From assembly GCA_043228905.1 (NCBI GenBank), contig JBHGNT010000017.1:15562001-15626000 (forward strand): a stretch of 64,000 nucleotides of DNA, in the 5' to 3' direction. The stretch comes from Azolla caroliniana (Eukaryota; Plantae; Polypodiophyta). Made by a program: the position numbers and the translations under genes. This document shows, in pieces, positions 230 to 63,081 of the stretch. How positions within the stretch are numbered: position 1 is the stretch's first letter; each line of letters begins with the position of its first letter. Below the pieces are notes generated by a model. It searched no databases, was not told where the DNA came from, and was given only the letters and a program-made list of their open reading frames with translations.

Positions 230-2224
230 TACATAATATATATATATATGGGTATTAATAAAGATTTGAAAATATATTTACATAAGGGTATTATCAATTA
301 TGTTGGACAAAAAAATTACATAAGCCCATGAAATATTAGATATTTCAATGAGATAGTAAAGAATATATTATACAAACAATACTCAAATTTGGAGTAGCAT
401 ATATACATACATACATACATACATATACATACATATACCTACATTCAAACATTACATCCATGAATATGTATATACATACATTACACCCATTTATACATGC
501 ATACTGACTAAACATAAATATATGTAGAAATACATATTACCATATGTACATACACATACATACATGCATTACATACTACATACATATTAGAATCGGCCAT
601 ATATATTGACATAGGAGTATACATAATACTACATAAAAATTACATATTACATATATACATACACATTCTCACAAACATTTTTATATATTACATTTTACAC
701 ACATATATTATTATACACACAATTATATACAAATGCAAATATACAAACCAAACACAAAAAAATAAAGTACATTTTATATATATGTATACACATATACACA
801 CATTCCATACATACAATACAATACAATATATGCATACATACATACACACACGAACATAACACACATCACACATGCATACCACCTACATTCATATATCACA
901 CATCACACATGCGTATATACCTGTACATTCAAACATTACATCCATGAATATGTATATACATACATTACACCCATTTATACATGCATACTAATTAAACATA
1001 AATATATGTACAAATATATAACCATATGTAAATATGTACATACACATACATGCATGCATTACATACTGCATACATATTAGAATCAAGTTTCAACCATATA
1101 TATTGACATACATATATACATGTAACATAGTACATACAATAAAATTACATATGCATACATACATACACAAATGCATATATACATACAAAACACAGAAAAA
1201 TAAATTACATATTATATATATACACATACACATACATATTAATACCTAAGACTACATTTATATGTATACAAATCTTCATACTTACAAACAAGTTACATAT
1301 ATTACATATATATACACGTGCACACACACATAAATAAATTAGATATTACATAGCATATAATCCATACCTATTACACAATATACAAATTTACACATACATA
1401 AATTACATATATACATATATAGATATATTACATATGTAAATACATATTCCACATATCACCATATATATAGATTATACTGGACCATACAAACCACAATACT
1501 TACATACACACACACACATTAGGTATATGTATACTTACACATACATTGGATATATACATGCATATTACGTACATATTACAAACATAAATCCATATACGAA
1601 CCATATACATACTAAACATGAAAATATCCCAAAAATATACATACATAAATACATTACATATATACGCATACATACATTCATACATTTACATACATATGAC
1701 CACATACACACATACACATACATACATTAGATATATACATACATATTATGCACATATTACAAACACATTCATACTCATTGAATCATGTATATTGACATAT
1801 ACATATATGCATACACATACATGCATATCACCATATATATACGTACATATGCCTACAATGTTATAAGTTTTACAAGCATACATCCATACACCTATATACA
1901 TATATACATACATTACATACATGCATACACATAAATACGTTACATACACATACATACGTACGTTACATATGTACATACATATCATCACAAACTACAATAC
2001 ATACATATATACATAAATATTACGAACAAACATCCACACACTCATGTATGCATATATGCATATGCCATACACTATACACATACATACATTACATATTACA
2101 TATATACATAATACACATATGTACATTCATGCATGTACATACATACATTGCATATGCATACATTACAATCACACATTCATATACATTGAGTCATGTACAT
2201 TGACATATGGATATATGCATACAC

Positions 2225-2287
<63 letters not shown>

Positions 2288-4700
2288 ATACATATGCATA
2301 CACGTATGTACATTTGTACATAGACATACCTATATTCATTTATACATTGCTACATATACATACATTAGATATATACATAAATATTATGCACATATTACAA
2401 TCACACATCCATACACATTGAATCATGTACATTGTCATATGGATATATGAATACACATACATACACAGATAAATTACATATGGATATATGCATACACATA
2501 TGTACATTCGTACATGGACATACATATATTCATTTATACATTGCTACATATACATACACATTAGATATATACATAGATATTATGTACATATTACAATCAC
2601 ACATCCATATACGTTGAATCATGTACATTTACATATGCATATATGCATACACATACATACATACATTACATATATGCATACACATATGTACATTCGTACA
2701 TGGACTTACATACTCATGCATTACATACATGACATATGCATACACATATGTACATTCGTACATGAATGTTTGAATGTTATGTTTAGTATGTATGTATGTA
2801 TGTGCACGTAATGTATGCATGTATGAATGAATGAATATATATATGTAATGTATGCATAAAATATGTATGCTTGCATGAATAAACATGAATGAATGGTTGT
2901 TTCCCCCCCCCCCCCAATCACATAGAATTTAAATCTTGTAAAAATAAAATAAAATAATGAATAAAATGGTTACACTAATGACAGGATATCTTCTTTAAAA
3001 AATAAAATAAAAACATGAATGAATGGATATATGAATGTACATATGTGTATATATGTAATATGTATATTTGTATGTGTGTGGGTGTTTGTTTGTAATATGT
3101 ATGTATGTGTATGTAAAATTAATGTATATACATGAGGGGTATGAATGTTTAAGTTAAACTATAAAAGTGATAAGTTATAAAAGTGAAAACATTCTAAAGA
3201 AAAAATAAACATAATGTGGGAGAGGGGTTTGAATGAGAATAAGAAAAAATGGGTAAGGGGTAGGGCTAGAAATAGGAGAAAGTATGGGAGGGGTAGGGCT
3301 GAAAATAGGAGAAAGTTGGGGAGGGGTAGGGCTTAGAATATAAATATTTTTACAAGGGGTGAGTACATAAGCCAGTGACAAATATAACACCGTGCTATGC
3401 AGTAGAGTGTAGGGTTGGAGATACAACATGAATAAAAATGAAATACAAAATCCCGGCTACCATGTGTAGTCCCGGACATATGAACTACAAGAGAGATAAA
3501 GAGATATAAAAGGGAATGCATCGCTACTAAATGTAGTCACATGTTTACAAACAATATATATTATACATACACATACATACATATTTCAAACAAACATCCA
3601 CACACACATATGTATTATGCATACACATACACATACAAATATACATGCATTACATATTACAATTTACATATATACACATATGTACATTCATATATTCATT
3701 CATTCATGTTTATTCATGCAAGTATACATATTTTATGCATACATTACATATATATATATATATTCATTCATACATGCATACATTACGTGCACATACATAC
3801 ATTCATACTAAACATAATATTCAAACATTCATGTTTTTTTAAATTTAGATTTTTGCCGCCTCCTTTGCTCTACCTCGTCTCTCCTCATTGTTGTTGTCGC
3901 CTCTTCTCCCCTTGTTGCTTCTGTCCTCGTTTTGCTGCCTCTGTTTTCGTTTTGATGCCGCCACCGCTCGCCTTGTCGTGACGCTTTTGCTCACCATTAT
4001 TCTCTGTCGAGGCTGCCACAACTACTCTACAAATATTTTACAGGTACACATAAGTACAAACATCATACATAAACCAACACATAAATTCTTAGACTTACAC
4101 ACACACACACACACACACAAACATGCCATACATACAATATATACAATAAACGAAATTAATACAATACAATACAATACAATACAACATACATATACACATA
4201 ACACATACATACAATACAATATGTACACACACACACACATGTGTATGTGTGTGTGTGTGTAGAATATACATACACATATGGACACATATATATGTTGTAT
4301 GGAACATACACAGACACACACAAACATAACACACATCACACATGCTATACATACAATAAATGCAATTAAATACAATACAATACAATATGTACATACATAT
4401 TACACACATACCTATATACACATGCAATACAATACCTACACACACACACACACATGCATACATACACACACAACACACATGCATACCACATACAAACATA
4501 TACGATGTATGGAACATACATACACACACACAAACATAAAACACAACAGACATGCATACCACATACTAACTAACATAACAAACAACACACATGCATACCA
4601 CATATAAACATATATGATGTATGGAACATACATACACACAAATCACACATGAATACCACATTCACAATGCACACATACACACATATATATGATGTATGGT
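230..4700. repeat. Degenerate (TA/CA/TACA)n low-complexity tract, including a pure (CA)n run at 2227-2283
   Basis: Direct reading; generates the spurious HT/YI/CV-rich ORFs in the track. Confidence 0.95.
2761..3834. repeat. Long imperfect inverted repeat (foldback) around a purine-rich core (about 3135-3540)
   Basis: 2761-2895 is the reverse complement of about 3695-3834, and 3011-3130 of about 3545-3712. ORFs 2629..2886(-) and 3541..3981(+) share the peptide MFIHASIHILCIHYIYI. Confidence 0.8.
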
Positions 4701-5562
4701 TATATGAAAAGTGATAGGTGGGTCATTCTATTTGTAGATAATGGATGAAGAATCTATTATTGAAGTGTTTGAACATGAGAGGGATGATGAAGATAAACCT
4801 TTGGGCATTGTAAGTGTGAGAGGAAGTCTTACATATGCAAAGATCCAAGTCGAAATAATTGAGGACGGTATATTTTATGAACCATTTTCCTTTGTGTACA
4901 CAAAAAATAATATTTTGAATGGGAAACAATAAGAGAAAAAATAATGTTACGACTTCATATGAGTCTATCCATAAAACTAAACATAAGGTTAATTTGTTTG
5001 TAATTTCATTATTGATATGCATTTTGGATTGTTCCATGTCTGCTCTTTGAGATATATATATCAAGTTCAAGATTGTTTTATTGTAAATTACATTTTTTTT
5101 TTATCACGTTATATTCTTCATATGTCTCAATAAACTAAAAAAAACTTATATGTGGCTTATATATGTTATACCTCTAGTGTTTTGGGTAATGTTTTCTAAT
5201 TGTGTGTGTATTACTTTGTACTTTACACATTGTGTTTTTAATCTATGTGGCACTTGATGAAGCATTTCTAGGAATTGCATATGATGTTTAATGTTCATTC
5301 ATAATTTTGCGAGTCATCAATTGTAAAGGCGATCATTGATCCCTTCTACGATTGGAAACTACGTGTGCATGTATATTTTATATGTAAAGGTATTTAAAAT
5401 GGGTGGTTATCAAAAAATATATTGGTAGTAAGGGGTATTTTTATTAATCTTTTTTCTACAAAAGGGTCACTAAAATAGTAAAAACCATACGTATAAGGGG
5501 TTTATAAATGATGTCATGAATGCACGTGATACAACCGTCTTATATATAGTGGAGTCCCCGGG

Positions 5563-8500
5563 AGACCTCCGACACCGAAAGAAGAGGAGGAAAGACCTCC
5601 GAACCCGAAAGAGGAGGAGGAAAGACCTTTGACATAGAAATAAGAGGAGGGGAGACCTTCGACACCACCAGCCCGTGTTCCGACACCGGACGACGACATG
5701 CCGTTCCAATATCCCAAGTACCGGGATGATCCGGATGCGGAAGCTCATGTCTATGCATTTCTACAAACTTGGGAAGCAAACCATGTGTCGCAATGCTTGA
5801 CTGCCGCCGGAGTAGAATGCTCGAAGATTGCAAAGTTCGGCATGACCTTGGAAGGACCAGTCGCGCGATGGCGCTTGACGCACCCTCCCGACACCATAAC
5901 AACGTTTGAGGACTTAAAAACCAGATTTTTATAGTTCTTCAACAAGGAGATGGATCAACGGGAGATGGTCGGCCTATTCTACTCTATACGGCAGGAACCT
6001 ACGGAAACCATTAAGCAATTCGTAATCCGGTTCCAACGAATGCACAGCCAGCTAAATCGAGCACCACCGGAAGTAGAGGCTAAAGCAATATTCCTAGCAG
6101 CGCTCTGGGAACCCTTGCGTACGATGTGCGCAGTGATTGATTTCCGCACCAACACGATCGACCAAGTCATAGACCAGGTCAGGGAGATGGAGAAAACAAG
6201 CTCGTGGCTAACAATGGGGGCCCTCTAGCGTACATTACCGACAGAAGATGACTTACGTTTTCAGCAAGCCATACAATGTACAACTTGTCTCAATGCCGGG
6301 CACTTGACAATAGAATGTACTATGTGGACACAGTGCATGTTATGCCATTCCAGGGCGCACACAATGGACCGATGCGAATATAACTTGCTGAACCGGCAAG
6401 TGGCACCAATAAGGCAAATCGAACCCCAAAGTAACCGGGAGGAGGAAGAAGAACGCTGGCGGCGAGATGAGCGTTACCGGCTAGCGCAAGATGTCTGGTA
6501 CAATGACAGAAAAGACGCTCATGACCGAGACCGGCAAGATAGCTACCGGGACTACAATGGTGATCGATATGAGCGATACAACCATGATCACTCCCCCGGT
6601 TACAACCAACGGAGGGAGGATCAAGGCACTTATGAAAACTGGCCCCGACAGGGTTACCGGAACAAAAAACGCTTCAACAAAAAATGGAACGCTAGAAAGG
6701 AGGACCACCAATGGTAGCCGGACAAGGGCACACCGACCACCAATAGAACCTCAACCGGGTACTAGGGTGAACGCCGAATCCAGCAACACCCGGAAAGCGT
6801 ATTGCTACTATTGCCAGCAAGAAGGACATTATAGTAATCAATGTCTGGTTAAAAGCTACGAGAAATGACCAGCCATAAATATGGTGGTAGCAAAAGTCGT
6901 CGACATACAACAAGTCACCACTAGGGCAAAAGGCAAAACAACGAAGTGGGAAACACAAGAGGCAATCCGAAAGCAAGCCACCAAGTGGGTGAAGAAGGCA
7001 AATGAGCGGAATGTGGCTAAGCTTGAACATCAAAAGGAGAAACCTGAAGAGGCCACCGACACGATTCAACCGGAAAACCCAACATGGCAAGTGTTACAAG
7101 AATATCAAATTACGCTGCCATTGGGTCGGTTATTACAGCTAGTGCCCCGGTTTATGGAAGGGCTGAAATTAGGAATGACCACATCAAATCCGTTGCCAGC
7201 TCCTACAATCACCGCCTTCGTCAAAGGACGAGAACTACCAGGGACAATTGTGGATGGAGGATCGGACGTGAACGTGATTAGTCTACGGACTTGTAATACC
7301 CTAGGAATCCAGGAATGGGAGCCTTGGCCGTTTTGGCTCCGGATGGCGGATACAAGTTCGGTCAGACCTACCGGTTTGATACGGGATTTAGACGTAACTA
7401 TCGGAGGACACGCATTCCGCATCTCAGCGGTGGTTCTCTAGCTCAATGCGCAAGGGGCTTAGCCACTGTTGCTGGGCCACCCATGGCTAAAAACGGCGCA
7501 TATCAAACAAAATTGGCGGAAAAACATGATTACCTTCCGGCGAGGAAAGGCTAAAGTAAGAGTACCTACCCACCCTCGATCGAGTACCGGCAAGGAGCTG
7601 ACACTGCTATATGCGGAAGGTGTAAACATGCTCGAGGGGCTTGCGAACGAAGAGGTCGACCAATACTTAGAAGAAAACCCAAAAATTGTACCCCTATTTG
7701 AAATTGATGTGGTAGAAGTAGTGTCACCATATATAACGCAATCGAATGATGCCGGCCGGGAACCAGATAGGGAAGCTATTAGAGAATTACGGCAAGCACA
7801 GGAAGCTCTGGAGAGGGAGATGGCGGTATCCCAACGCGCGAAAGCATCCGAGTTAGAGGAAGTGAATTTAGGAACCAGGGACAACGCAAGACCGGTTCAT
7901 ATTGCTAAGGAAATGTCACCGGACAATAAGACGAAGATGATCACTTTATTAAAGGAATTCCGGGACGTATTCGCCTGGTCCTATGAAGACATGTGGGGGT
8001 TGGATCCTCAGTTGTACCAACACCAGATACATCTCAGTAAGGATGCCAAACCGGTAGCACAACAGAGTTACCGGATGAACCCTAACTATGCGACGAAGGT
8101 CAAAGAGGAAATTGACAAGTTGCTACAGGTCGGTTTTATCCGACCAATGAAAAAAGCTATATGGTTAAGTCCCATAGTCTTCATGCCGAAAAAGAACGGC
8201 AAGATCCGGGTGTGTGTCGACTACCAGAAACTCAATGCGGCAACAGTGACTGATGCCTTTCCACTTCCATTTACGGATGGAGTCCTGGACACGGTAGCCG
8301 GTCATGAAGTGTATAGCTTCCTAGATGGTTTTAGTGGCTACAATCAAATAAGGATGCACCCCGACGACCAAGACAAGATGGCGTTCATCACCGAATGGGG
8401 AATTTTCGTTGCAGTGGTAATGATGTTCGGGCTCAAGACCGCGCCGGCGACCTTCCAACCAATAATCATGGAAAAATTTTGCGAGTTCATCCTGGCATTC

Positions 8501-52995: not shown

Positions 52996-55900
52996 AGCTG
53001 TACGATAGAACCGAAACCGAAGAAACCCTGTACGATAAGTAAAAAATTTTGCTTCTCCAACAACGGAGGGTGTATGATAGTCGGCATCGTTGGCCGAGAA
53101 AAGGCAAGGGCGGAAGTGCGACTTCAAGCGTGCGGAGTTCTCGGCCCGGACGAGGACATCAGCGGAGCCGTGGAGGCGGTCTCCTTCGACGACACCTTGG
53201 GAATGCTGAGGAAGGTAGCCGGAGAAGACCTTAACGAAGACCGGACGATACCGGTATGTTCCGAAGAGATGTACGATGTCATCGCGAACTTCAGTCAGGG
53301 GCTCGGGTCGGATCGGACGGCCCGAGTTAGCACGAAGTACAAGACTGTGGACCGGAAGGTAAGGCCAGTCGCGGCACCCTTACCGGAGGGCAGCGAATCC
53401 CGAATCAGAGGGGTTGCGTCGGACCCCAGTTTACGAGATCCGGTCTGCATAGGTCACACCTTCACCGACAGGACGCTCCGGGAGCTCAAAATCGATGGGG
53501 GCGGGTCCTGCTGCCAGCAGAAGAAGATCGGTTTCGGAAAATGCTCGGAAGGCACGGGAAAGCCTTCGCATTCTCACCGGGAGAGATCGGGTGCGTAGAC
53601 CCGACAATCGTGGAGCCGATGGTGATATTCACGGTATCGCATGTGCCGTGGAATCTCAAGCCGATTCCAGTACCGAGAGCTCACATCCCGAAGTTGATGG
53701 AGCTATTGAGGCAGAAAGTCGATATGGGCATTCTCGAACCGTCAAGTGCCCCAGACTCGAACCGATGGTTTACCGTACCAAAGAAAAACGGAACATTGCG
53801 CTTCATTCAAGACCTGCAGTTGGTCAACAGAGTGACCATTCGGAACGCAGGAATCGGACCGACCATAGACGAGTTCGCGGAGGCCTTCGCCGGAAGGTCG
53901 ATTTATTCGGTCAGTGATCTGTACTCGGGGTACGACCAGTTCCAGCTAGCCGTGGAGAGCAGAGACATTACGACGATGCGAACTCCCCTCGGCCTAGTGC
54001 GAATGTGTACCCTGCCACAAGGAGGGACCAACTCGGTGGCCCACATGGTGAATGCAATGAACAAGGTACTGAGGGATTGCATCCCGGACGTCACCATGGC
54101 ATTTCTAGACGACATCCCGATAAAGGGGTGCCCGGTGGAAGAGAAGGACGAGACACTCGGGCCGGATGGATGTCGGCGATTCGTGGCAACACACATCGAC
54201 GACTACGAGAGGGTGCTACAAAGGCTAGAGGGTGCGAGGCTCACCTTCTCCTGGGAGAAATCGTCCTTCGGGCAATCAGAAATCCTGGTGGTCGGACACC
54301 TATGTGGACCATATGGCCGGAAGCCGTCTCCGGCAAAGGTAGAAGCCATCTCCGCGATGAAGACCGACTGTAGCTCGGTTACGGAAGTTCGGAGGTTCCT
54401 GGGGGCATGTGCATTCTACCACATATGGATCCCGCATTACGCCCATGTTGCGGAACCGCTATACAGGTTGCTGAAGAAGGGGCGAAAATTCGAGTGGCGG
54501 GACGAGCACACGGAGTCGGTCCGGAAGCTGAAGGAAACTCTTGCGGCAGCACCGGCGCTCCGGAAGGCTATCTACGAGAAGGGTACCCCGGTATACATAA
54601 CGGTGGATACGAGTCCGACCGGGATCGGATGGGTCGTCAACCAAGAAAACGAGGACGGCATTCGGTTCCCGATCCGATTCGGCGCAAAGGTCCTCAATGA
54701 GCGACAGCGAGGGTACGCCCAGGTTAAACGCGAACTCTGGGGTATCGTTTCGGCAGTAAAGGCCGACAAAGACTACCTGATCGGGACAGAAGTGATTATC
54801 GAGACGGATTGCCTGCCAATTCTCAGCATGGTTTCCGGATGCGCGACACCGGACCTGGCGATGCTCAGGTGGATAACGTACATCAAGTCCCTGGACCCGG
54901 AAATACGACACATTTCCGGAAAAAACAACGCCATGGCCGACATGCTTTCGAGGGCGAGGTTTGATGACGAGGGCGGCATGGTTTCGGAGGACGAAGAAGT
55001 CGGCGTGGACTTCTTCGGAGCAGCGTACGTGACGACCGATGGGACGAGCACTCCGACACTTAACGACTTCGACGAGAGCAAGTACGACGGCGAGTGGCTA
55101 CGGATCGGTGGGTTTTTGAGGACAATGACGCCGGATGCGTCATGGACGAGGGACGAGGCCAACCGGATCCGGAAGAAAGCATACCGATTCTTTCTCCGGG
55201 ACGGATACTTATGGAAGCACCCGAAGAAGAGGAGCGGCGTCCCACTCCGGGTGGTGGCGACGAAGGAAGAACAGGAGGAGCTGCTGACGGCCTACCACGA
55301 CAGCCCTTGGGCTGGACACCGTGGAGCGTGGGTCACGTTCGAGAAGATAAAGGGGAAGTACTGGTGGTCGGGACTGTACCGGGATGTGCATCGGTTCGTG
55401 ACAACTTGCGAGAGCTATCAGATGCACTCCGTAGTCCGACATCGGGACGAGCTACACCCTACGTACCCTCCGACCATCCACTTCAAATGGATGGTAGATC
55501 TCGTGACGATGCCGATGGGAGTAGGACAGATGCGGTATCTGGTCCTGGCTCGGGAAGACCTGACGAACCAGGTGGAAGGCCGGGCCCTTCAGAACAAAAC
55601 GACCGCGGCCGTATGTCGATTCCTGATCGAGGACGTGGTATGCCGGTACGGGTGCGTCGGGAAGATCGTGGTTGATCGCAGGGAGTTGGACGCCGAAGAG
55701 GCCGAGGAGCTGTTCGACCGACTAGGAGTCAAGCTCTCGCTTACCACTGCGTACAATCCGGAGGCGAATGGGAAGGTGGAGCGCGGACACGGACCGATCG
55801 TCAAGGCGTTAGTTCGGGCATGCGGAGGTCAAGTCGGGAACTGGCCGCGGCTGTTGCCTTACGCGTTGTGGGCGGACCGAACTACGCACGGTTCGGTAAC

Positions 55901-56432
55901 CGGATTCATGCCGGCAGAGCTCATGTTTGGGCAGAAGCCGATCATGCCGATGGAACGTACGATCTCCTCATGGGCAACCGTGGACTGGAGGGACGAGATG
56001 AGCCGGGAGGAACTGTTGGCGGCGCGCATACGACAGCTTGAGCGAAGACCGGAGGACGTGGAGCAGGCTACGGGAAAGCTTCGGGTGGCAAGTATGAGGA
56101 ACAAAGCCCGGTTCGACCGGACGCACCGGCTCCGACCAAAGAAGATCGAGGAAGGCGATTGGGTGCTATTCTACGACAGCAGCCTCGACAACCAGCACCG
56201 AGCGACACGGAAGTTCGCAAGAAGGTGGTTCGGGCCTTACGTGGTCCAAAGCGCCAACGACAACGGGACGTACCATCTGGCGGAACTCGACAGCACGAGA
56301 ATGGCGATACCGGTAGCTGGGAAGCGGATCAAAGCGTTCAAGAAGCGTCACGACGACGAGCCGGATCCGGTTAACCTGGACAGCGACGACGAACGATCCG
56401 AAACCGAGGAAGAACCGACGGGCGGGGAATGA
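52936..56432 (+). pseudogene. Pol (RT-RNase H-integrase) of G2b, with one TGA (52963) and one apparent 1-nt deletion (about 53506)
   Basis: ORFs 53074..53598 and 53541..56432; DLYSGYDQ, FLDDIPIKG, VDTSPTGIG, YNPEANGKVER, WFGPYVV motifs. Confidence 0.92.
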
Positions 56433-59083
56433 AGGCTAGACCGGTTTTCTCCGTCCCAACTCAATTTGGCGCATGCCGGTGGATGCGCGGTTAGGTAGGG
56501 GCGGATGTCGTGAAGAAAACCGTCCACAAGCGGAATCGGTGCACCGGAGCGTAGGAACCGGCTCTTCATGCACGTACGCCTTATATTGTACATAGAAGAT
56601 CCTAGGTAGGTAGATTCGGTAGGTAGGAAGTTAATGGGAAACGGCTCCTTCCTTGCATATAAAAGGACGGAGACGAGGAAGGGGGAAGGGGATCGCGAAG
56701 TAAGAGAGGACGAAGTGTTGTCGGATTGTGGGCCGAAGGCTTCTCTCTCTTCCATACTCCGTAGCTTCTTTCTGTGCAGGTTTCGTGAGGCTCGCGCTGC
56801 TCTGAGGAATGCCCAAGTGCTTCCGGCAGCACCTCCAACCTACTCCTTTCTTTCTGAGCGTTTGCGAACAGGCATCGGCATCTGTTCGCCGGCTTGTTCG
56901 GTTGTAACCGACTTCGTGCTTCTTGTTGTTTGTCTCTGTTAATATATACATACATACCTTCGTGTCTCTGTGTGTTGGTTTCCCGCTCGCGTCTTCATGT
57001 CGAAGGGCCGTGTCCCTGTGGATCTACGCTCGCACCTAGTGGGTCTCTTCCCTTCTCCTTTCTCTCTTGCTCTTCGATACAAGACCCCCGAGGTCCTGCC
57101 TCATTCCACGCATCCGCGAGGAATACCTCGACAACGCACTTATCTAGAGTCAGATACATCCCCAAACTCTCCTTCTCGAATCATCAATTCTGCGAGCATT
57201 ACCAATACAGCAAACAAACAGCCGTGACACACCCAACATCTGCCCCGAGAGAATCGAGTCCACTCGATTTGGTCCACTCGGACGTATGTGGTCCTATGTC
57301 ACATCAATCCCTCAGTGGCGTTCTGTATTTCGTTAGCTTCATTGACGACTCGACTCAGAAGGTGTGGGCTTATCCGATTAAAACCAAAGATCGTGTTTTC
57401 TCGATCTTTTCCGATTGGCTCGCCATGGTTGACAATCAGTTCGGTCAAAAACTGAAAAGCTTTCGGTCCGATAACAGGCGAGAGTTCAAATCAGAGGAAT
57501 TCATCAAATTTTGTCAACAATGCGGCATACAACAGCACCTCATAGTCTGGAGCAGAATGGAATTGCCGAGCGAACGAATCGGACAATTTAAGAACAAATA
57601 GTTTCCAAGCTCCAACACTCCGAACTGTTGGATGGCTTCTGGGCAAGGGCCCTACTTACTACAGTACACATAATCAATATGTCATCGAGCAGGCCTCTAG
57701 GACTTCGAATAACTCAGGAATTATGGACCGGCAGTAAGCCAAATTACAACAAGCTGAGGATTTTTGAATGTGAGGCATATGCCCTCATCTCGAAAGATGA
57801 TCCCCAAAAACTTGCACCACAGTCCAGGAAATGTATTTTTCTCGGTTATGGATTTAGATGGCGAAATGGGATACCGACTCTGGGACCCTAAACACAGACA
57901 GATTGTCTGAAGTTCGTACGTCGTGTTCAATGAGTCAACTATGCATCAATCGGTCGAAAAGCCGATCAAAGTCCGAAGGGTAACTTTTTCCGATGTGCCA
58001 ACCCTTCCCGAAGGCCCAACGCACAACACACGGTCAGCTTCACGAGTAGTTCAACCTTCAAACACCAACTCGGAGAATTTTGACTTGACACAGCCGAACA
58101 AGTCGGCTTTGGACCATCTGACCATGGCAACCGATGCGACTAGTCCAATCATACCTCAAAGATCCGAGAGACTGTCACAACCCCCGGAGAGATACTCCCC
58201 TAGAATCTTCTTTATGGACGCCGGTGAACCGATGTCATACGAAGAAGCATCAGCGCTAGCCGATTCGGCCACCTGGCATCTGGCAATGGAGTCTGAAATG
58301 AACTCCATTCACGCAAACCAGACTTGGGACTTGGTCGAACTACTGAAAAATAAACGTGCTCTTCCATGCAAATGGGTCTATCGAATTAAGGAGACGTTTG
58401 ATTTGGCCAACCCAAAATTCAAATCAAGATTAGTAGCAAAGGGTTTTCAACAAAAACACAGCATCGATTTCGACGAAATTTTTTCGCCATTGCTGAAAAT
58501 GACCACCCTTCGCTTTATGCTCGACGTAGTGGCAGCCGAGAATTTAGAGTTGATTTGGCTAGATGTCAAAACAGCTTTCCTCCACTGTGATCTCGAGGAG
58601 GAAATTTATATGGAGTACCCGAAAGGCTTTGTGGCATCCGGCCAAGAACATCTAGTCTGCCGACTTGAGAAGAGTCTTTATGGCCTGAAATAGGCGCCGC
58701 GATAGTGGTACAAGAAGTTTGACGACTTCATCCAATCGATCGGCTTCTCAAAGAGCAATGAGGACCATTGTCTCTTCACGAAAACAGCTCGAGATTGATC
58801 ACCCATCTTCCTCATCATCTATGTAGACGTCATGCTAATCTCTAGACGCCATGCTTGCGAACTAGCTGAACTCGTTCGGCAACTGCAGTTGAAGTTTGCC
58901 ATGAAGGATCTCGGTCTGGCACAACACATCCTTGGTATGAAGATAAGTCAGAATCATAATCAACGATAATTGTTTCTGTCCCAGTTCGACTATTCTCAAT
59001 TGGACCATGAAGTCGAAACAAGGAGTACGGACGGTAGGCAATCGGTGGGTGCAATATGTAAGATGTAGAGTTATAGAGAAAAG

Positions 59084-59171
59084 GTTTAGGGTTTGAGTTT
59101 TGGTTTTGGTTTAGGGTTAGGGTTAGGGTTTAAGAATTAGGGTTTAGTGTTTGTTTCGGGCTTAGGGTTTA
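59084..59171 (+). repeat. Degenerate telomere-type repeats (TTTAGGG/TTAGGG); second copy at about 61427-61530
   Basis: GGTTTAGGGTTAGGGTTAGGGTTT etc. read directly inside both direct repeats. Confidence 0.85.
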
Positions 59172-59467
59172 GAGGATAAAAGGGTTTACGATTAAGTGCA
59201 AGAGGGGATAAAGTGAAAAGAAACACCAAGAATCATTTGAGCACACCCAAATCATTTGACAAACTTGGTGTAAGTGAGGCATAATAAGAGATAGAGGAAG
59301 GGGAGGGAGAGAGAGAGAGAGAGAGACGAGGGATTAATCACTAACATTAAAATTAGAAACAAGTTAAAACATAACCATAAGCTAAATAGTCTAGATTAGA
59401 GAGAGGGAGAGATTAAGAAGGAGACTAATTTTCATTAAGAAAAAGGAAAAATTACAAAACGATGGGT

Positions 59468-59528
59468 AATGGTCATGAGCAAACTAGTTTCGCCCCCTAC
59501 GGGGCTCATCAGTGCTACAATGACCATT
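59468..59528 (-). ncRNA. Type I hammerhead ribozyme (minimal stem III)
   Basis: Minus strand: AAUGGUCAU-UGU-AGCA-CUGAUGA-GCCCC-GUAG-GGGGC-GAAA-CUAG-UU/UGCU-C-AUGACCAUU. Both core boxes intact, 5-bp stem II, palindromic AACUAGUU stem III, stem I of 4+9 bp; predicted cut after GUU between 59482 and 59481. Confidence 0.9.
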
Positions 59529-60272
59529 CGGGGTGCATAGGTTTATATAAGGAGTTTTCGAAGTGGCTTTAGAGAAATGACAATATGGAGTGGGGTTGTG
59601 CTTATGGATGTGATTGAAAGGGGGGGAAGATTTGGAGAAGAAGGAAGAGGATTTTATGGGCTTTAATGTGATAAGGGGAAGGCTTTGGTATGAGGTTATA
59701 TTGTAAAAGGAGGGATAAGAAGAAAAGGGAGAGTTTAGGATATAAAATGTAAAAGTGAGGAAATATAAGGGGCATTAAGAGAGAGGGGGAAACAAGGCTT
59801 ACGTGAGATGATGAGAAGGGAATGAGAGAGAGGGAATGAGTAGACAGGGGAGTGAGTAGATATAGGAGGAGAGAGAGTGGGAAAACGTGAAAAAATTAAG
59901 AGAGAGCTTAAGGGGAGAGACAGGAGAGAGATGTGTGTGTAAACTACAAAAAGTAAGAGAGAGAAAGGAAAGAGGAGAGAGGTAAGGGAGAGAGACATGT
60001 GTGGGAAAAATAAAGGGGAAGGCTATACATTTAGGAAGAGGATGGGAGGGGTAGGGTAAGAAAAAGTAGAACATGGGTGAGGGTAGAAATATAAAAATAG
60101 AAAGTTGGAGAAAGAGTAAAAAGAAAACGAAGGGACTTACAAAGAGGAGGCTAAGGATTTAGAAAAAAGGACAAGGAGGGGTAAGGTAAGCAAAAAAAAG
60201 CGAGAGATCAGTGAGGGTAGAAGACTAAAAAAGGAATATGAAAATGAAAGGGTATATTGTGATAAGAAAAAC

Positions 60273-60316
<44 letters not shown>

Positions 60317-61659
60317 ATAAAAAGTAAGAAAGCTAAAGGAAAAGAGAGAGAGGTAGGAGTTAGAGAAGAGAGAAAGGGTATATCGACCCGCACTCCTCAC
60401 AAAGTCGTAAGGCAAACCCTAAATAAAAAGCTACTAAAAAGAAAGGTTAAGGGGAGGGGTAATGTTTAAAATATATAGAAAAGGAGGAGAGGGGCAACGT
60501 GTGAATATAATCTAAAGATTAGGTTTAATAAAAGTGTAGGAGAGAGGTATAAGTGAAACTAGGAGGAATTAGGGGTATGAGTGAAACTAGGAGGTAGGGG
60601 TATGAAAAAAATAGTAAACGGGGAGGGGTATCCAATATTTTGAGGAGAGGAAGGGTAGGATAGGAATTAAAAATGTCAAAATAATAGAGGGAGGGGTATA
60701 ATGAAATTGAGAAAAGTAGATGGAGGGGTAGAATGAATTTTAGGAGAAAATTAGGAAGGAGGGTTAGAGTGTGATTTCAAATGAAAGGGGGAAGGGTAGA
60801 GTATACGAATAGAGGTGAGAGAGGGTAGAGTGAAATATAGGAAAAGAAAATGGGAAGGGTAGAGATAGAGAAAGAGTAACAAAAATTAAAAGAGAAAGAG
60901 AAAGAGGAGAGAAATGGGGGATTTTGAGTGAAAACATGAAAACGGAGAGGGGTAGAGTGACAATTAGTTAAACAGACGAGGGGCATTTTTACAATTTTTT
61001 AGAAATCAAGGAGAAGAGGGGGAGTGATAAGGATTGTGCATATAAGCCAGCTACAACATGTAGTCCCGAGCATTAGTTAAAGAGGGAGAGGTGGGCACAC
61101 ACGGCTACCATGTGTAGTCTCGTGCTATTAATACAAAGAAGAGATAAAAGGGGCGAGTAATGAGTGTCAATGTTGCATGTTGGGATGGAAGAAGAAAACC
61201 GGTGTCGTCGTCGCAAGTGCCAATCAACGTGTTATGAGGGAACTCATCACGAAACGGATGCTCAATGGGTGTCGATGCACGACCGTCGTGGGTGCCATTC
61301 TCCGTTGAAAGGGCCTCCATAGAAAGCATGACGTATTCTCAATTGGACCGTGAAGTCGAAACAAGGAGTGCGGACGGTAGGCAATCGGTGGGTGCAATAT
61401 GTAAGATGTAGAGTTATAGAGAAAAGGTTTAGGGTTTAGGAATTAGGGTTTGAGTTTTGGTTTTGGTTTAGGCTTAGGGTTAGGGTTTAAGAATTAGGGT
61501 TTAGTGTTTGTTTCGGGCTTAGGGTTTAGAGGATAAAAGGGTTTACGATTAAGTGCAAGAGGGGATAAAGTGAAAAGAAACACCAAGAATCATTTGAGCA
61601 CACCCAAATCATTTGACAAACTTGGTGTAAGTGAGGCATAATAAGAGATAGAGGAAGGG

Positions 61660-61702
<43 letters not shown>

Positions 61703-63081
61703 GAGGGATTAATCACTAACATTAAAATTGGACGTGTCCTCGAACGCTTCGATATGCAATCGGCAAAATCTGCCTCTACCGCGTTCCCTATTCATACTTG
61801 GCTATCTCAGCGAGACTGCCTGATATCCTGTCCGGAGGGGGAAATTATGAAGTCGGTATCGTATGCACTGGCAGTTGGCTCCCTAATGTACGCGATGGTC
61901 ATGACACGGCCTGATATCGCTCACGCCATTAGAGTCGTCAACAAATTTATGCATAATCCCGGTTGATTGCACTGGAACGTAGTCAAGCATGTGTTCAGAT
62001 ATCTGGTGGGCACAAAAGACCTTGGTATTCTATTCGGCCCGAATGACATCTTAGGCGTAGTCGAATATACCGACTCTGACTTTGTGGGTTGCATAGACAG
62101 CCGTAAATCGACAACCGGATATTGTTTCAAACTCAGTAATGGAGCCATCTCATGGAAATTGAAACTTCAGGAGTGCACTGCCACATCACTGACCGAGGCC
62201 AAATACGTAGCCGCATCCGATGCAACGAAAGAGGCCTCATGGCTCCGTCGGCTGGCTTGCACGTTTCGACAATCCAAAATCGGCTCGGCTCCAACTGTGT
62301 ACAGTGACAGTCAGGGTGTTGTTGCTCTGTCGAAAAATCTGGTTCATCACAACGTCTCCAAGCATATCGATGTTTGATATCATTTCGTTCGGGACTACGT
62401 CATTATAGGGAAAATTGGTCTAGAGAAAATATCGACAACCGATAATGTTGCAAACGCATTAACCAAGTGCCTTTCAACGGATCGATTTCAATCACTTCGG
62501 CATCGAATGGGCGTAATGAAGAACCAGTCTGATTAAATCGGACACTCAGGACGTTTCTCAGACAATAGACCTTGATAGTTCGAACTTCGGCTTCAGTCTC
62601 TCCGAACTCGGCCAATCCGGCCTTCTGCTCTTCGGATTTCACTGACTCGAACGAATTCTCGATTGTTCGTAAACCTTGTATCAATCTGTATTGTACATTC
62701 ATTTCGGTCTACAGATTTCAAATGTATACACCCATTATGGGGGAGTGTTGAATACGAGTTTCTAATGGACGTATTCACACCGTCTCCTTTTGTACACACT
62801 AGGCTTAGGCTATTTATGTAAATAGTGAGAAGGGAAATTACCCTAAGTCAGTCAGCATATAAACTGACTTTATAACCCAGTTAGTGCTTGGTTGCTTTAA
62901 GTTGTAATATACTCTTTACATTGTGCCTAACTATCTCTCTCTCTTTGGCGTACTAATTGTATTGTTTTTCTTTGTTGCTATAGATGTTACGATCTTGTAT
63001 CTACTGACGATCTTATAGGAGCTTATAGAAGAAGAGTGTTGATCTTGTTCCGCATTAGATGACGGTGATCCCAATATCCCA

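Follow-up and report, generated by a model that had tools for sequence, protein, structure and literature searches.

How did a 2733-bp sequence that encodes no credible protein come to lie in the middle of a copia reverse transcriptase (RT) gene of Azolla caroliniana, and to which class of elements does it belong? The locus is part of a stretch of 64,000 nucleotides from the Polypodiophyta species A. caroliniana (assembly GCA_043228905.1, contig JBHGNT010000017.1, positions 15,562,001 to 15,626,000 of the forward strand), hereafter the window, to which all coordinates refer unless a contig is named. A preliminary description, drawn from the letters of the window alone, had proposed a non-coding retroelement that carries a hammerhead ribozyme and telomeric repeats, depends on Penelope-like elements (PLEs), and was possibly copied from a self-cleaved circular RNA. 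The evidence presented here indicates that the insert, whose RNA sense lies on the minus strand, is probably a non-autonomous derivative, devoid of functional open reading frames (ORFs), of an endonuclease-lacking, telomere-type (Athena/Coprina-like) PLE, copied in trans from an RNA longer than one unit onto a DNA break. The cis elements that it has kept are the first codons of ORF1, a pyrimidine-rich body, a type I hammerhead, a CCCTAA(A) tract, and a 3' module with a hairpin.

The whole insertion occupies 58994-61726 (minus strand) and splits a decayed copia RT exactly. The left part of this target (57923-58993, plus strand) can be translated up to ..LSQFDY at 58993, and the right part (61727-62377, plus strand; RT/RNase H) from IGRVLERFDM.. 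at 61727; stop codons were already present in the interrupted copia. Insert-free joints were found in contigs of three DNA runs, either 58992 connected to 61727 by a single C or 58993 connected directly to 61727. These contigs are paralogous copia copies without the insert, and the insertion therefore extends exactly from 58994 to 61726, without a target-site duplication (TSD) and without loss of target sequence. Microhomologies of three nucleotides are present at both junctions, TAT (58991-58993 = 61334-61336) and ATT (61727-61729 = 59354-59356). The restoration of the copia frame on removal of the insert, the two microhomologies, and the lack of a TSD had all been read from the letters in the preliminary description, and each is borne out. 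At the insert there are no TG..CA ends, terminal inverted repeats (TIRs), 5'-TC/3'-CTRR ends, A or B boxes, or poly(A). Readings of the insert as a long terminal repeat (LTR) element, a solo LTR, a Helitron, or a TIR element are rejected on these end sequences and on the missing TSD.

Internally the insertion is a partial tandem. Direct repeats match 58991-59094 to 61334-61437 (98%), 59086-59326 to 61443-61683 (100%), and 59303-59357 to 61678-61732 (96%), with a spacing of 2343 bp plus a 14-nt indel and a length difference in a (GA)n run. This spacing gives a unit of 2343 bp with about 390 bp of redundancy, as the preliminary description had it. The full unit runs from 61336 to 58994 in RNA sense (58994-61336, minus strand), and it is preceded by a 5'-truncated partial copy (61337-61726, minus strand) that represents the last ~360-390 nt of the unit, a redundancy resembling the pseudo-LTRs of PLEs. 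The two redundant copies (61337-61726 and 58994-59353) differ by 2 substitutions, the single 14-nt indel, and the length of the (GA)n run. No second copy of the element was found elsewhere in the 64-kb window.

Other copies were retrieved from assemblies with the low-complexity ORFs of the element as handles. Four of them are continuous across the unit junction of 58994-61336: L001 (94% identity to the insert; terminal overlap 119; implied unit 2463 bp), L003 (92-95%; overlap 55; 2448 bp), L002 (~79%; overlap 77; 1940 bp), and L019, a 1896-bp contig of the L002 subfamily (overlap 55; 1841 bp). Each terminal overlap equals a typical assembler k-mer, so these four contigs were assembled as circles. 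Two relatives with a different (class B) hammerhead, L020 and L032, carry two units in tandem on ordinary contigs with long flanks, comprising LINE (long interspersed nuclear element) and other sequence, that look like genomic DNA. Head-to-tail tandem organization is thus a property of the family. Every relative has one hammerhead per unit together with a CCCTAA(A) tract that starts 310-350 nt downstream of the predicted cut. In the insert this reverse-complement telomeric tract, C-rich on the RNA strand, lies at 59085-59167 (minus strand), ~310-400 nt downstream of the cut, a position kept in L001, L002, and L003; a second copy (61428-61524, minus strand) is contained in the truncated upstream copy. 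The C-rich repeats noted earlier near the minus-strand 3' end are a retained feature of the relatives as well. A search of sequencing reads found the element under at least two organism labels and in at least six studies, mostly at 90-95% identity, and the element is accordingly a multi-copy, diverged family.

The hammerhead motif at 59468-59528 (minus strand) is of type I and is supported by its fold, by a covariance model, and by covariation. Its stem I consists of a distal helix, AAUGGUCAU/AUGACCAUU, and a proximal helix, AGCA/UGCU. The canonical core, with CUGAUGA, GAAA, and the U17 cleavage position in a GUU triplet, spans 59512-59482; stem II (GCCCC/GGGGC, loop GUAG) is followed by GAAA and by a palindromic helix III, ACUAGU. 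The cut is predicted after U17, between 59482 and 59481, exactly where the preliminary description had placed it, and the fold has a z-score of -3.4. In the proposed check against Rfam hammerhead models the curated score was not reached. At gathering thresholds there is no Rfam match in the whole window; the HH9 model, which expects a helix III hairpin, unlike the minimal palindromic helix III of the insert, gives 21.7 bits (E 0.1) against a gathering score of 52, and relatives reach at most 29.8 bits in Rfam models. The bare core pattern, moreover, also turned up in 28 of 100 shuffled versions of the window. With a sub-threshold score and a pattern so common by chance, the case for the hammerhead rests on its relatives.

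The pattern used to scan metagenome contigs fixed nothing beyond the core and the first two stem II pairs. The scan yielded 29 loci, 22 of which fall into four plant-type classes, A to D. Stem I, unconstrained in the scan, pairs in all of them with different sequences: AAUGGUCAU/AUGACCAUU in class A, as in the insert, AUGGUCUUA/UAAGACCAU in class B, GGCCAC/GUGGCC in class C, and, in class D, a form of the class B helix that has ten pairs and GGCA/UGCC as its proximal stem. A covariance model built on class A matches all classes and has a single match in the window, at 98.9 bits. In the alignment of relatives 94% of cells are paired, compared with 80% in shuffles (0 of 500 reach 94%), although these figures are somewhat inflated because the alignment was fitted to the model. 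Double-sided changes are seen in 15 of 18 pairs, and controls in which the pairing was slid pair at 33-45%. The CUGAUGA/GAAA core, whose lack of conservation among copies, together with lack of cleavage, the preliminary description had named as a contrary outcome, is identical in L001-L003, L012, and classes B-D. Helix III is ACUAGU in the insert, AUUAGU with G-U pairs in L001, ACAUGU in L036 and L037, and ACGCGU in L035. Logan contigs of other families overlap the insert only at 59479-59515, their flanks forming a different, complementary stem I, and they show paired one-base deletions in stem II. Because the relatives keep stems I and II with compensatory changes, the motif is, on comparative sequence evidence, a real and conserved hammerhead of the minimal dimer type known for PLEs, and its cleavage is predicted. 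The palindromic helix III would favor cutting mainly when two copies pair, as in multimeric transcripts, and the ribozyme may serve to trim tandem transcripts to unit length. The core pattern of the scan also matched L030 and L031, from other organisms, with convincing stem I pairing, and the GC-rich bacterial contigs L011 and L021.

A second conserved region defines the 3' end of the insertion. In classes A-D the 3' module has the order ..ACCCxCCGAUGAUCCACCAUUC, CGCACUCCUUGU, and a 4-bp hairpin, G[A/G]C[C/U]-NNNN-GG[U/C]C. In the insert it occupies 58994-59051 (minus strand; ..CGYACUCCUUGU followed by the hairpin at 59003-59014) and is conserved in classes A-D and in L036, with the hairpin pairing in 7 of 7 sequences compared. 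A second copy at 61337-61394 (minus strand; hairpin 61346-61357) continues into the next unit, and in tandem copies generally the module is continued by a conserved segment in which AUGGAGG occurs. The end points of the copies, which had been suggested for inspection, reveal a polarity. In five independent dispersed insertions homology stops 7-16 nt past the hairpin: 9 nt in the insert (58994), 12 nt in L012 (with a tRNA-His gene ~115 nt beyond), 16 nt in L026, and ~7-10 nt in L032 and L016. The 5' ends vary; that of the insert lies 131 nt after the ribozyme cut, and L026 and L004, which have different flanks, both begin in the last telomeric repeats. A fixed 3' end combined with variable 5' ends is the polar pattern left by reverse transcription that begins at a set point, and these end positions make the 3' module, as far as sequence can tell, the probable RT start site. 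The exact starting nucleotide may be chosen by short annealing, and the TAT of the insert falls inside the start window. The insert, L026, and L032 are built alike, with a truncated copy placed upstream of a full unit, which stops at the common 3' site. The preliminary description of the insert as a 1.17-mer thus stands as regards this layout, the classic PLE pseudo-LTR arrangement, whereas its implication that the ends were arbitrary and set by microhomology only gives way to a family-wide 3' window. Of the other contrary outcome that had been named, copies with TG..CA ends and TSDs or with TIRs, the insert shows none of the features, and these partial-tandem insertions carry no TSD. The 3' hairpin of the L002 subfamily, CAUGACCAU-AUGGUCA, corresponds to both strands of hammerhead stem I placed back to back; an alternative pairing with the ribozyme is possible, or the resemblance may be coincidence.

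The class A relative L012 (1130-1340 and 1456-1530) contains a complete 3' module fused to telomeric repeats, and after these a second module that ends the insertion. A fusion of this kind is what priming on a G-rich overhang would leave behind, and the family has therefore also used chromosome ends. The insert itself is not at a chromosome end, being interstitial in the copia RT; only the internal scar of L012 joins the module to telomeric repeats.

What remains of coding sequence in the unit points to the same group of elements. There is no credible ORF, only low-complexity ORFs and one of 74 aa (61329 to 61105), and the latter is not conserved, the L002 subfamily having neither its ATG nor an open frame; the absence of an encoded protein noted at the outset is upheld. 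When the unit was searched by tblastn with 178 PLE proteins, no remnant of an RT emerged, and the sole match was to the N-terminus of ORF1. Since neither an RT ORF nor a remnant of one is present, the insert can be classified only as a non-autonomous derivative and not as a PLE proper. The ORF1 match lies within the 74-aa ORF, at 61213-61329 (minus strand), where a remnant of a PLE ORF1 start was recognized: aa 4-39 of the ORF align with aa 1-36 of the ORF1 of L036 (42% identity, E 5e-6, BLASTP).

L036 is an RT-encoding relative of the kind that the preliminary description had proposed to seek. Together with L037 it comes from the same ENA series as most of the non-coding copies, and the two encode ORF1 and an RT of 620-641 aa, that of L036 measuring 641 aa and containing no GIY-YIG domain. 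Their hammerheads lie 240 nt downstream of the RT ORF and 200 nt upstream of ORF1, score 33-36 bits with the class A model (E ~1e-6), and share their stem I sequence with class A. The CGCACUCCUUG-hairpin module is found in L036 ~45 nt upstream of the ORF1 start codon, and when classes A-D and L036 are aligned at the nucleotide level over the CGCACUCCUUG module, the hairpin, and the ORF1 start, the 163 columns have a mean identity of 72%. Another relative, L035, has the order (CCCTAAA)n, ORF1, a 555-aa RT, a hammerhead (helix III ACGCGU), ~200 nt, and (CCCTAAA)n, so that the ribozyme is followed by the tract just as in the insert. The earlier idea of a non-autonomous, PLE-dependent element is supported by the conserved hammerhead and tract and by the modules shared with L036.

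The RTs concerned belong to a large set of RT-only proteins. A 209-aa ORF of the contig L015 has 3033 homologues, of which the long ones are RT-only proteins of ~550-640 aa matched at their C-termini, including three 580-aa proteins of Selaginella moellendorffii. These RT-only homologues match Pfam RVT_1 below threshold, and none has a GIY-YIG domain. Pfam gave no match for the 209-aa RT C-terminus or for the ORF1s, and a PDB sequence search with the 641-aa RT gave none. L015 was considered as an RT ORF with a 3' untranslated region (UTR) homologous to the body of the insert, a reading that was rejected because the contig is a composite of two elements; it shows an association of an RT-encoding PLE with class A and no shared 3' UTR. 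Read on the reverse strand (oriented 240-1375), L015 has a hammerhead at 1214-1273, with a CUGAAGA core and helix III ACAUGU, ~320 nt past the RT stop codon. A related RT-PLE fragment, L034 (717-1835), has a hammerhead core whose GAAA has decayed.

From this anatomy, the conservation of modules, the defined 3' boundary, the tandem organization, and the homology to an RT-encoding PLE we infer mobilization in trans, priming on a break, and an active ribozyme, and the following sequence of events can be proposed. A PLE RT acting in trans would bind an RNA that exceeded one unit in length and that stemmed most likely from read-through transcription of a tandem array or from a template jump. Where the copia RT was broken, a plus-strand 3'-OH ending in ..GACTAT would be exposed, which could anneal by TAT:AUA to the element RNA 10-12 nt downstream of the hairpin, inside the usual RT-start window of the family. 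Synthesis of complementary DNA (cDNA) would then proceed through one full unit and 390 nt of the upstream unit, and the cDNA end would be joined to ATTGGACG.. across the break through the 3-nt ATT microhomology. As the element encodes no endonuclease, no TSD would arise. The template must have exceeded one unit, and the same DNA would result whether this template was a read-through RNA from a tandem array, arose by a template jump from end to end, or was a ligated circle.

Several observations weigh against this origin. The Rfam hammerhead scores stay under threshold, and self-cleavage is a prediction. Covariation in the 3' hairpin is not significant, being equaled in 140 of 500 shuffles. Metagenome assemblies are the source of the related contigs, and expression is putative, the sole 'RNA' read run being labeled so by guess. 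No RT-encoding partner of high nucleotide identity to class A was found: blastn of class A against the autonomous contigs L033-L038 revealed no long similarity, and L036 shares short modules only. In L015 a 5'-truncated RT-PLE stops near oriented position 1375 and a class A fragment adjoins it there; this is also the point at which L034 diverges. Finally, in Terminons, the giant Athena-based telomeric elements of bdelloid rotifers, the telomeric tract is terminal and immediately adjacent to the ribozyme (PMC12477314), unlike that of the insert.

The strongest competitor concerns the template. In a retrozyme-type route the hammerhead would cut multimers into 2.3-kb monomers, a host RNA ligase would circularize them, and a PLE RT would copy more than one turn to give the 1.17-mer. 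The insert is indeed longer than its unit and continuous over the ribozyme cut site, there is one hammerhead per unit, relatives assemble as circles, and animal non-LTR retrozymes, now linked to PLEs, use this route (PMC7229834; bioRxiv 10.64898/2026.07.22.740005). Tandem DNA, of which L020 and L032 are direct examples, would however yield circle-like contigs just as readily. Partial tandems are a general trait of PLEs, clades that lack hammerheads included (PMC8557442), and uncleaved RNA is the dominant PLE template in vitro (PMC11167929). In the runs covered, none of them confirmed as RNA, no back-joined 59482|59481 junction is documented, and a circle of 2.3 kb would exceed known retrozyme circles in size by a factor of about six or more. 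This route is for these reasons considered unlikely. A circular template is possible but not needed, because read-through RNA from tandem arrays, which exist, explains the same structure. A broader speculation, to which we give limited credence, is that non-seed plants hold a set of large (1.9-2.5 kb) 'non-LTR retrozymes', ORF-less derivatives of endonuclease-lacking PLEs with a dimer-dependent type I hammerhead, a telomere-complement tract, and an RT-start hairpin, which would spread via circular RNAs, processed by the hammerhead and then ligated, of a size far beyond that of any known retrozyme circle, while an RT acting in trans might use them to patch breaks and chromosome ends.

An origin without any RNA step would require a piece of a 2.3-kb tandem (macrosatellite) array to have been captured as filler in a double-strand break by microhomology-mediated end joining. 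The 3-nt microhomologies at both junctions, the lack of a TSD and of poly(A), and the tandem organization of the family fit such an event, but random ends would be expected of it, and the five independent insertions share their 3' boundary within ~10 nt while their 5' boundaries differ. The cis modules common to the insert and an RT-encoding PLE likewise speak for a PLE derivative, and a purely DNA-level event is very improbable. That the hammerhead is a chance match in some other repeat (a solo LTR, a Helitron, or a SINE-like element, that is, one akin to short interspersed nuclear elements) is scarcely credible, for despite the low Rfam score and the frequency of the core pattern in shuffled windows, stem I, which lay outside the search pattern, pairs in every plant-type locus and covaries, and the terminal features of those repeats are absent.

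If a non-autonomous PLE derivative is accepted, its nearest counterparts are the endonuclease-lacking PLEs (Athena/Coprina and those of Selaginella). Endonuclease-lacking PLEs with features of this kind are known mainly from animals and Selaginella. In these elements reverse-complement telomeric repeats are paired with hammerheads, and the pseudo-LTR layout of a truncated and a full copy is typical of PLEs (PMC8557442). The PLEs of Selaginella encode RTs, are telomere-associated, and carry type I hammerheads (PMC4209133, PMC12477314); minimal dimer-type hammerheads have been reported for PLEs (PMC4209133), and a PLE RT has been found to start copying at defined positions within the RNA (PMC11167929). 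The insert agrees with the endonuclease-lacking group in its type I hammerhead within a repeated terminal region, its reverse-complement telomeric repeats near the 3' end, its head-to-tail or partial-tandem organization, 5' truncation, and lack of a TSD, the trace of telomeric-repeat addition in L012, and the modules in common with the RT-only PLE L036. It differs in having no RT ORF, in its interstitial position, and in the placement of the tract, which is not next to the ribozyme but ~310 nt away from it, and ~95 nt short of the 3' end. The hammerheads of Selaginella PLEs are reported to be canonical with a typical helix III (PMC4209133), whereas helix III of the insert is a minimal palindrome. 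Terminons share with the insert C-rich telomere-complement repeats, a hammerhead, and chains of units, yet they are giant, coding, and telomeric, while the insert is 2.3 kb long, non-coding, and interstitial.

Two groups of retrozymes also invite comparison. Metazoan non-LTR retrozymes are, like the insert, non-coding tandems in which each unit has a single type I hammerhead with a dimer-type helix III; as is the case here, they occur alongside autonomous PLEs, and they have been argued to derive from the terminal regions (pseudo-LTRs) of these elements (PMC7229834; bioRxiv 10.64898/2026.07.22.740005). Their units measure 170-450 nt, as against 1.9-2.5 kb here, their hosts are animals rather than a non-seed plant, and they are expressed as circular RNAs, while the insert adds a telomeric tract and an ORF1-start remnant. 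The insert thus has the tandem organization and type I topology of non-LTR retrozymes and not their size, and by analogy it would work as a non-autonomous PLE in the manner of these animal elements. To our knowledge, all plant retrozymes described so far are of the LTR type and carry type III hammerheads. They too are non-autonomous, hammerhead-bearing, and hosted by plants, but their type III hammerheads sit in true LTRs accompanied by a primer-binding site and a polypurine tract, 4-bp TSDs, circles of 600-1000 nt, and mobilization by gypsy elements, none of which applies here. As topology, ends, and TSD all disagree, the insert cannot be filed as a plant retrozyme, in line with the preliminary description.

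Telomere-associated retroelements are considered rare in plants, and no published description of gene-less PLE derivatives in non-seed plants was found. New here are the exact empty site, the defined 3' boundary, and the module and ORF1 start through which the non-coding families are linked to an autonomous PLE. On the origin preferred here, a non-seed plant lineage would carry several gene-less type I hammerhead families derived from endonuclease-less PLEs, a plant case that parallels the recent proposal of animal retrozymes as non-autonomous PLE sequences. The common 3' module with its sharp insertion boundary is a concrete candidate for the RNA site at which a PLE RT begins copying, and the exact, TSD-free insertions would illustrate the outcome, within interstitial DNA, of integration primed on a break by an RT that has no endonuclease.

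Between the ribozyme and the ORF1 remnant lies a non-coding body (59540-60980, minus strand), pyrimidine-rich and laden with short internal repeats, in which only low-complexity ORFs occur; the plus strand of the insert is correspondingly strongly purine-rich, with a GC skew of up to +0.89. Within the body, at 60385-60425 (plus strand), inverted repeats I1-I4 and local alignment identify a degenerate 3' module in inverted orientation, with a CCCTAAA unit attached to it. Against the module-telomere junction of L012 this segment has a local alignment score of 33 (shuffle mean 16.9, standard deviation 3.0). It coincides with a peak in read depth and with loose ends of other families, and it resembles the inverted truncated copies common in PLE insertions. 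A tandem duplication of ~130 bp at 60620-60750 is present in L001 and in most other copies (three DNA runs), and the copy in the window is without it.

The surroundings of the insertion are themselves composed of nested retrotransposons (around 53541-58993). A gypsy Pol ORF of 963 aa (53541-56432, plus strand) lies directly upstream of the decayed copia (56894-58993); its closest named proteins are from the liverwort Riccia sorocarpa (~60%), and its best matches (80%) are metagenome proteins. In the relative L028, a class C hammerhead element (229-258) is found just upstream of an L1-type LINE (1900-8101) that has an ORF1 with a zinc knuckle and an ORF2 with APE endonuclease, RT, and zf-RVT domains.

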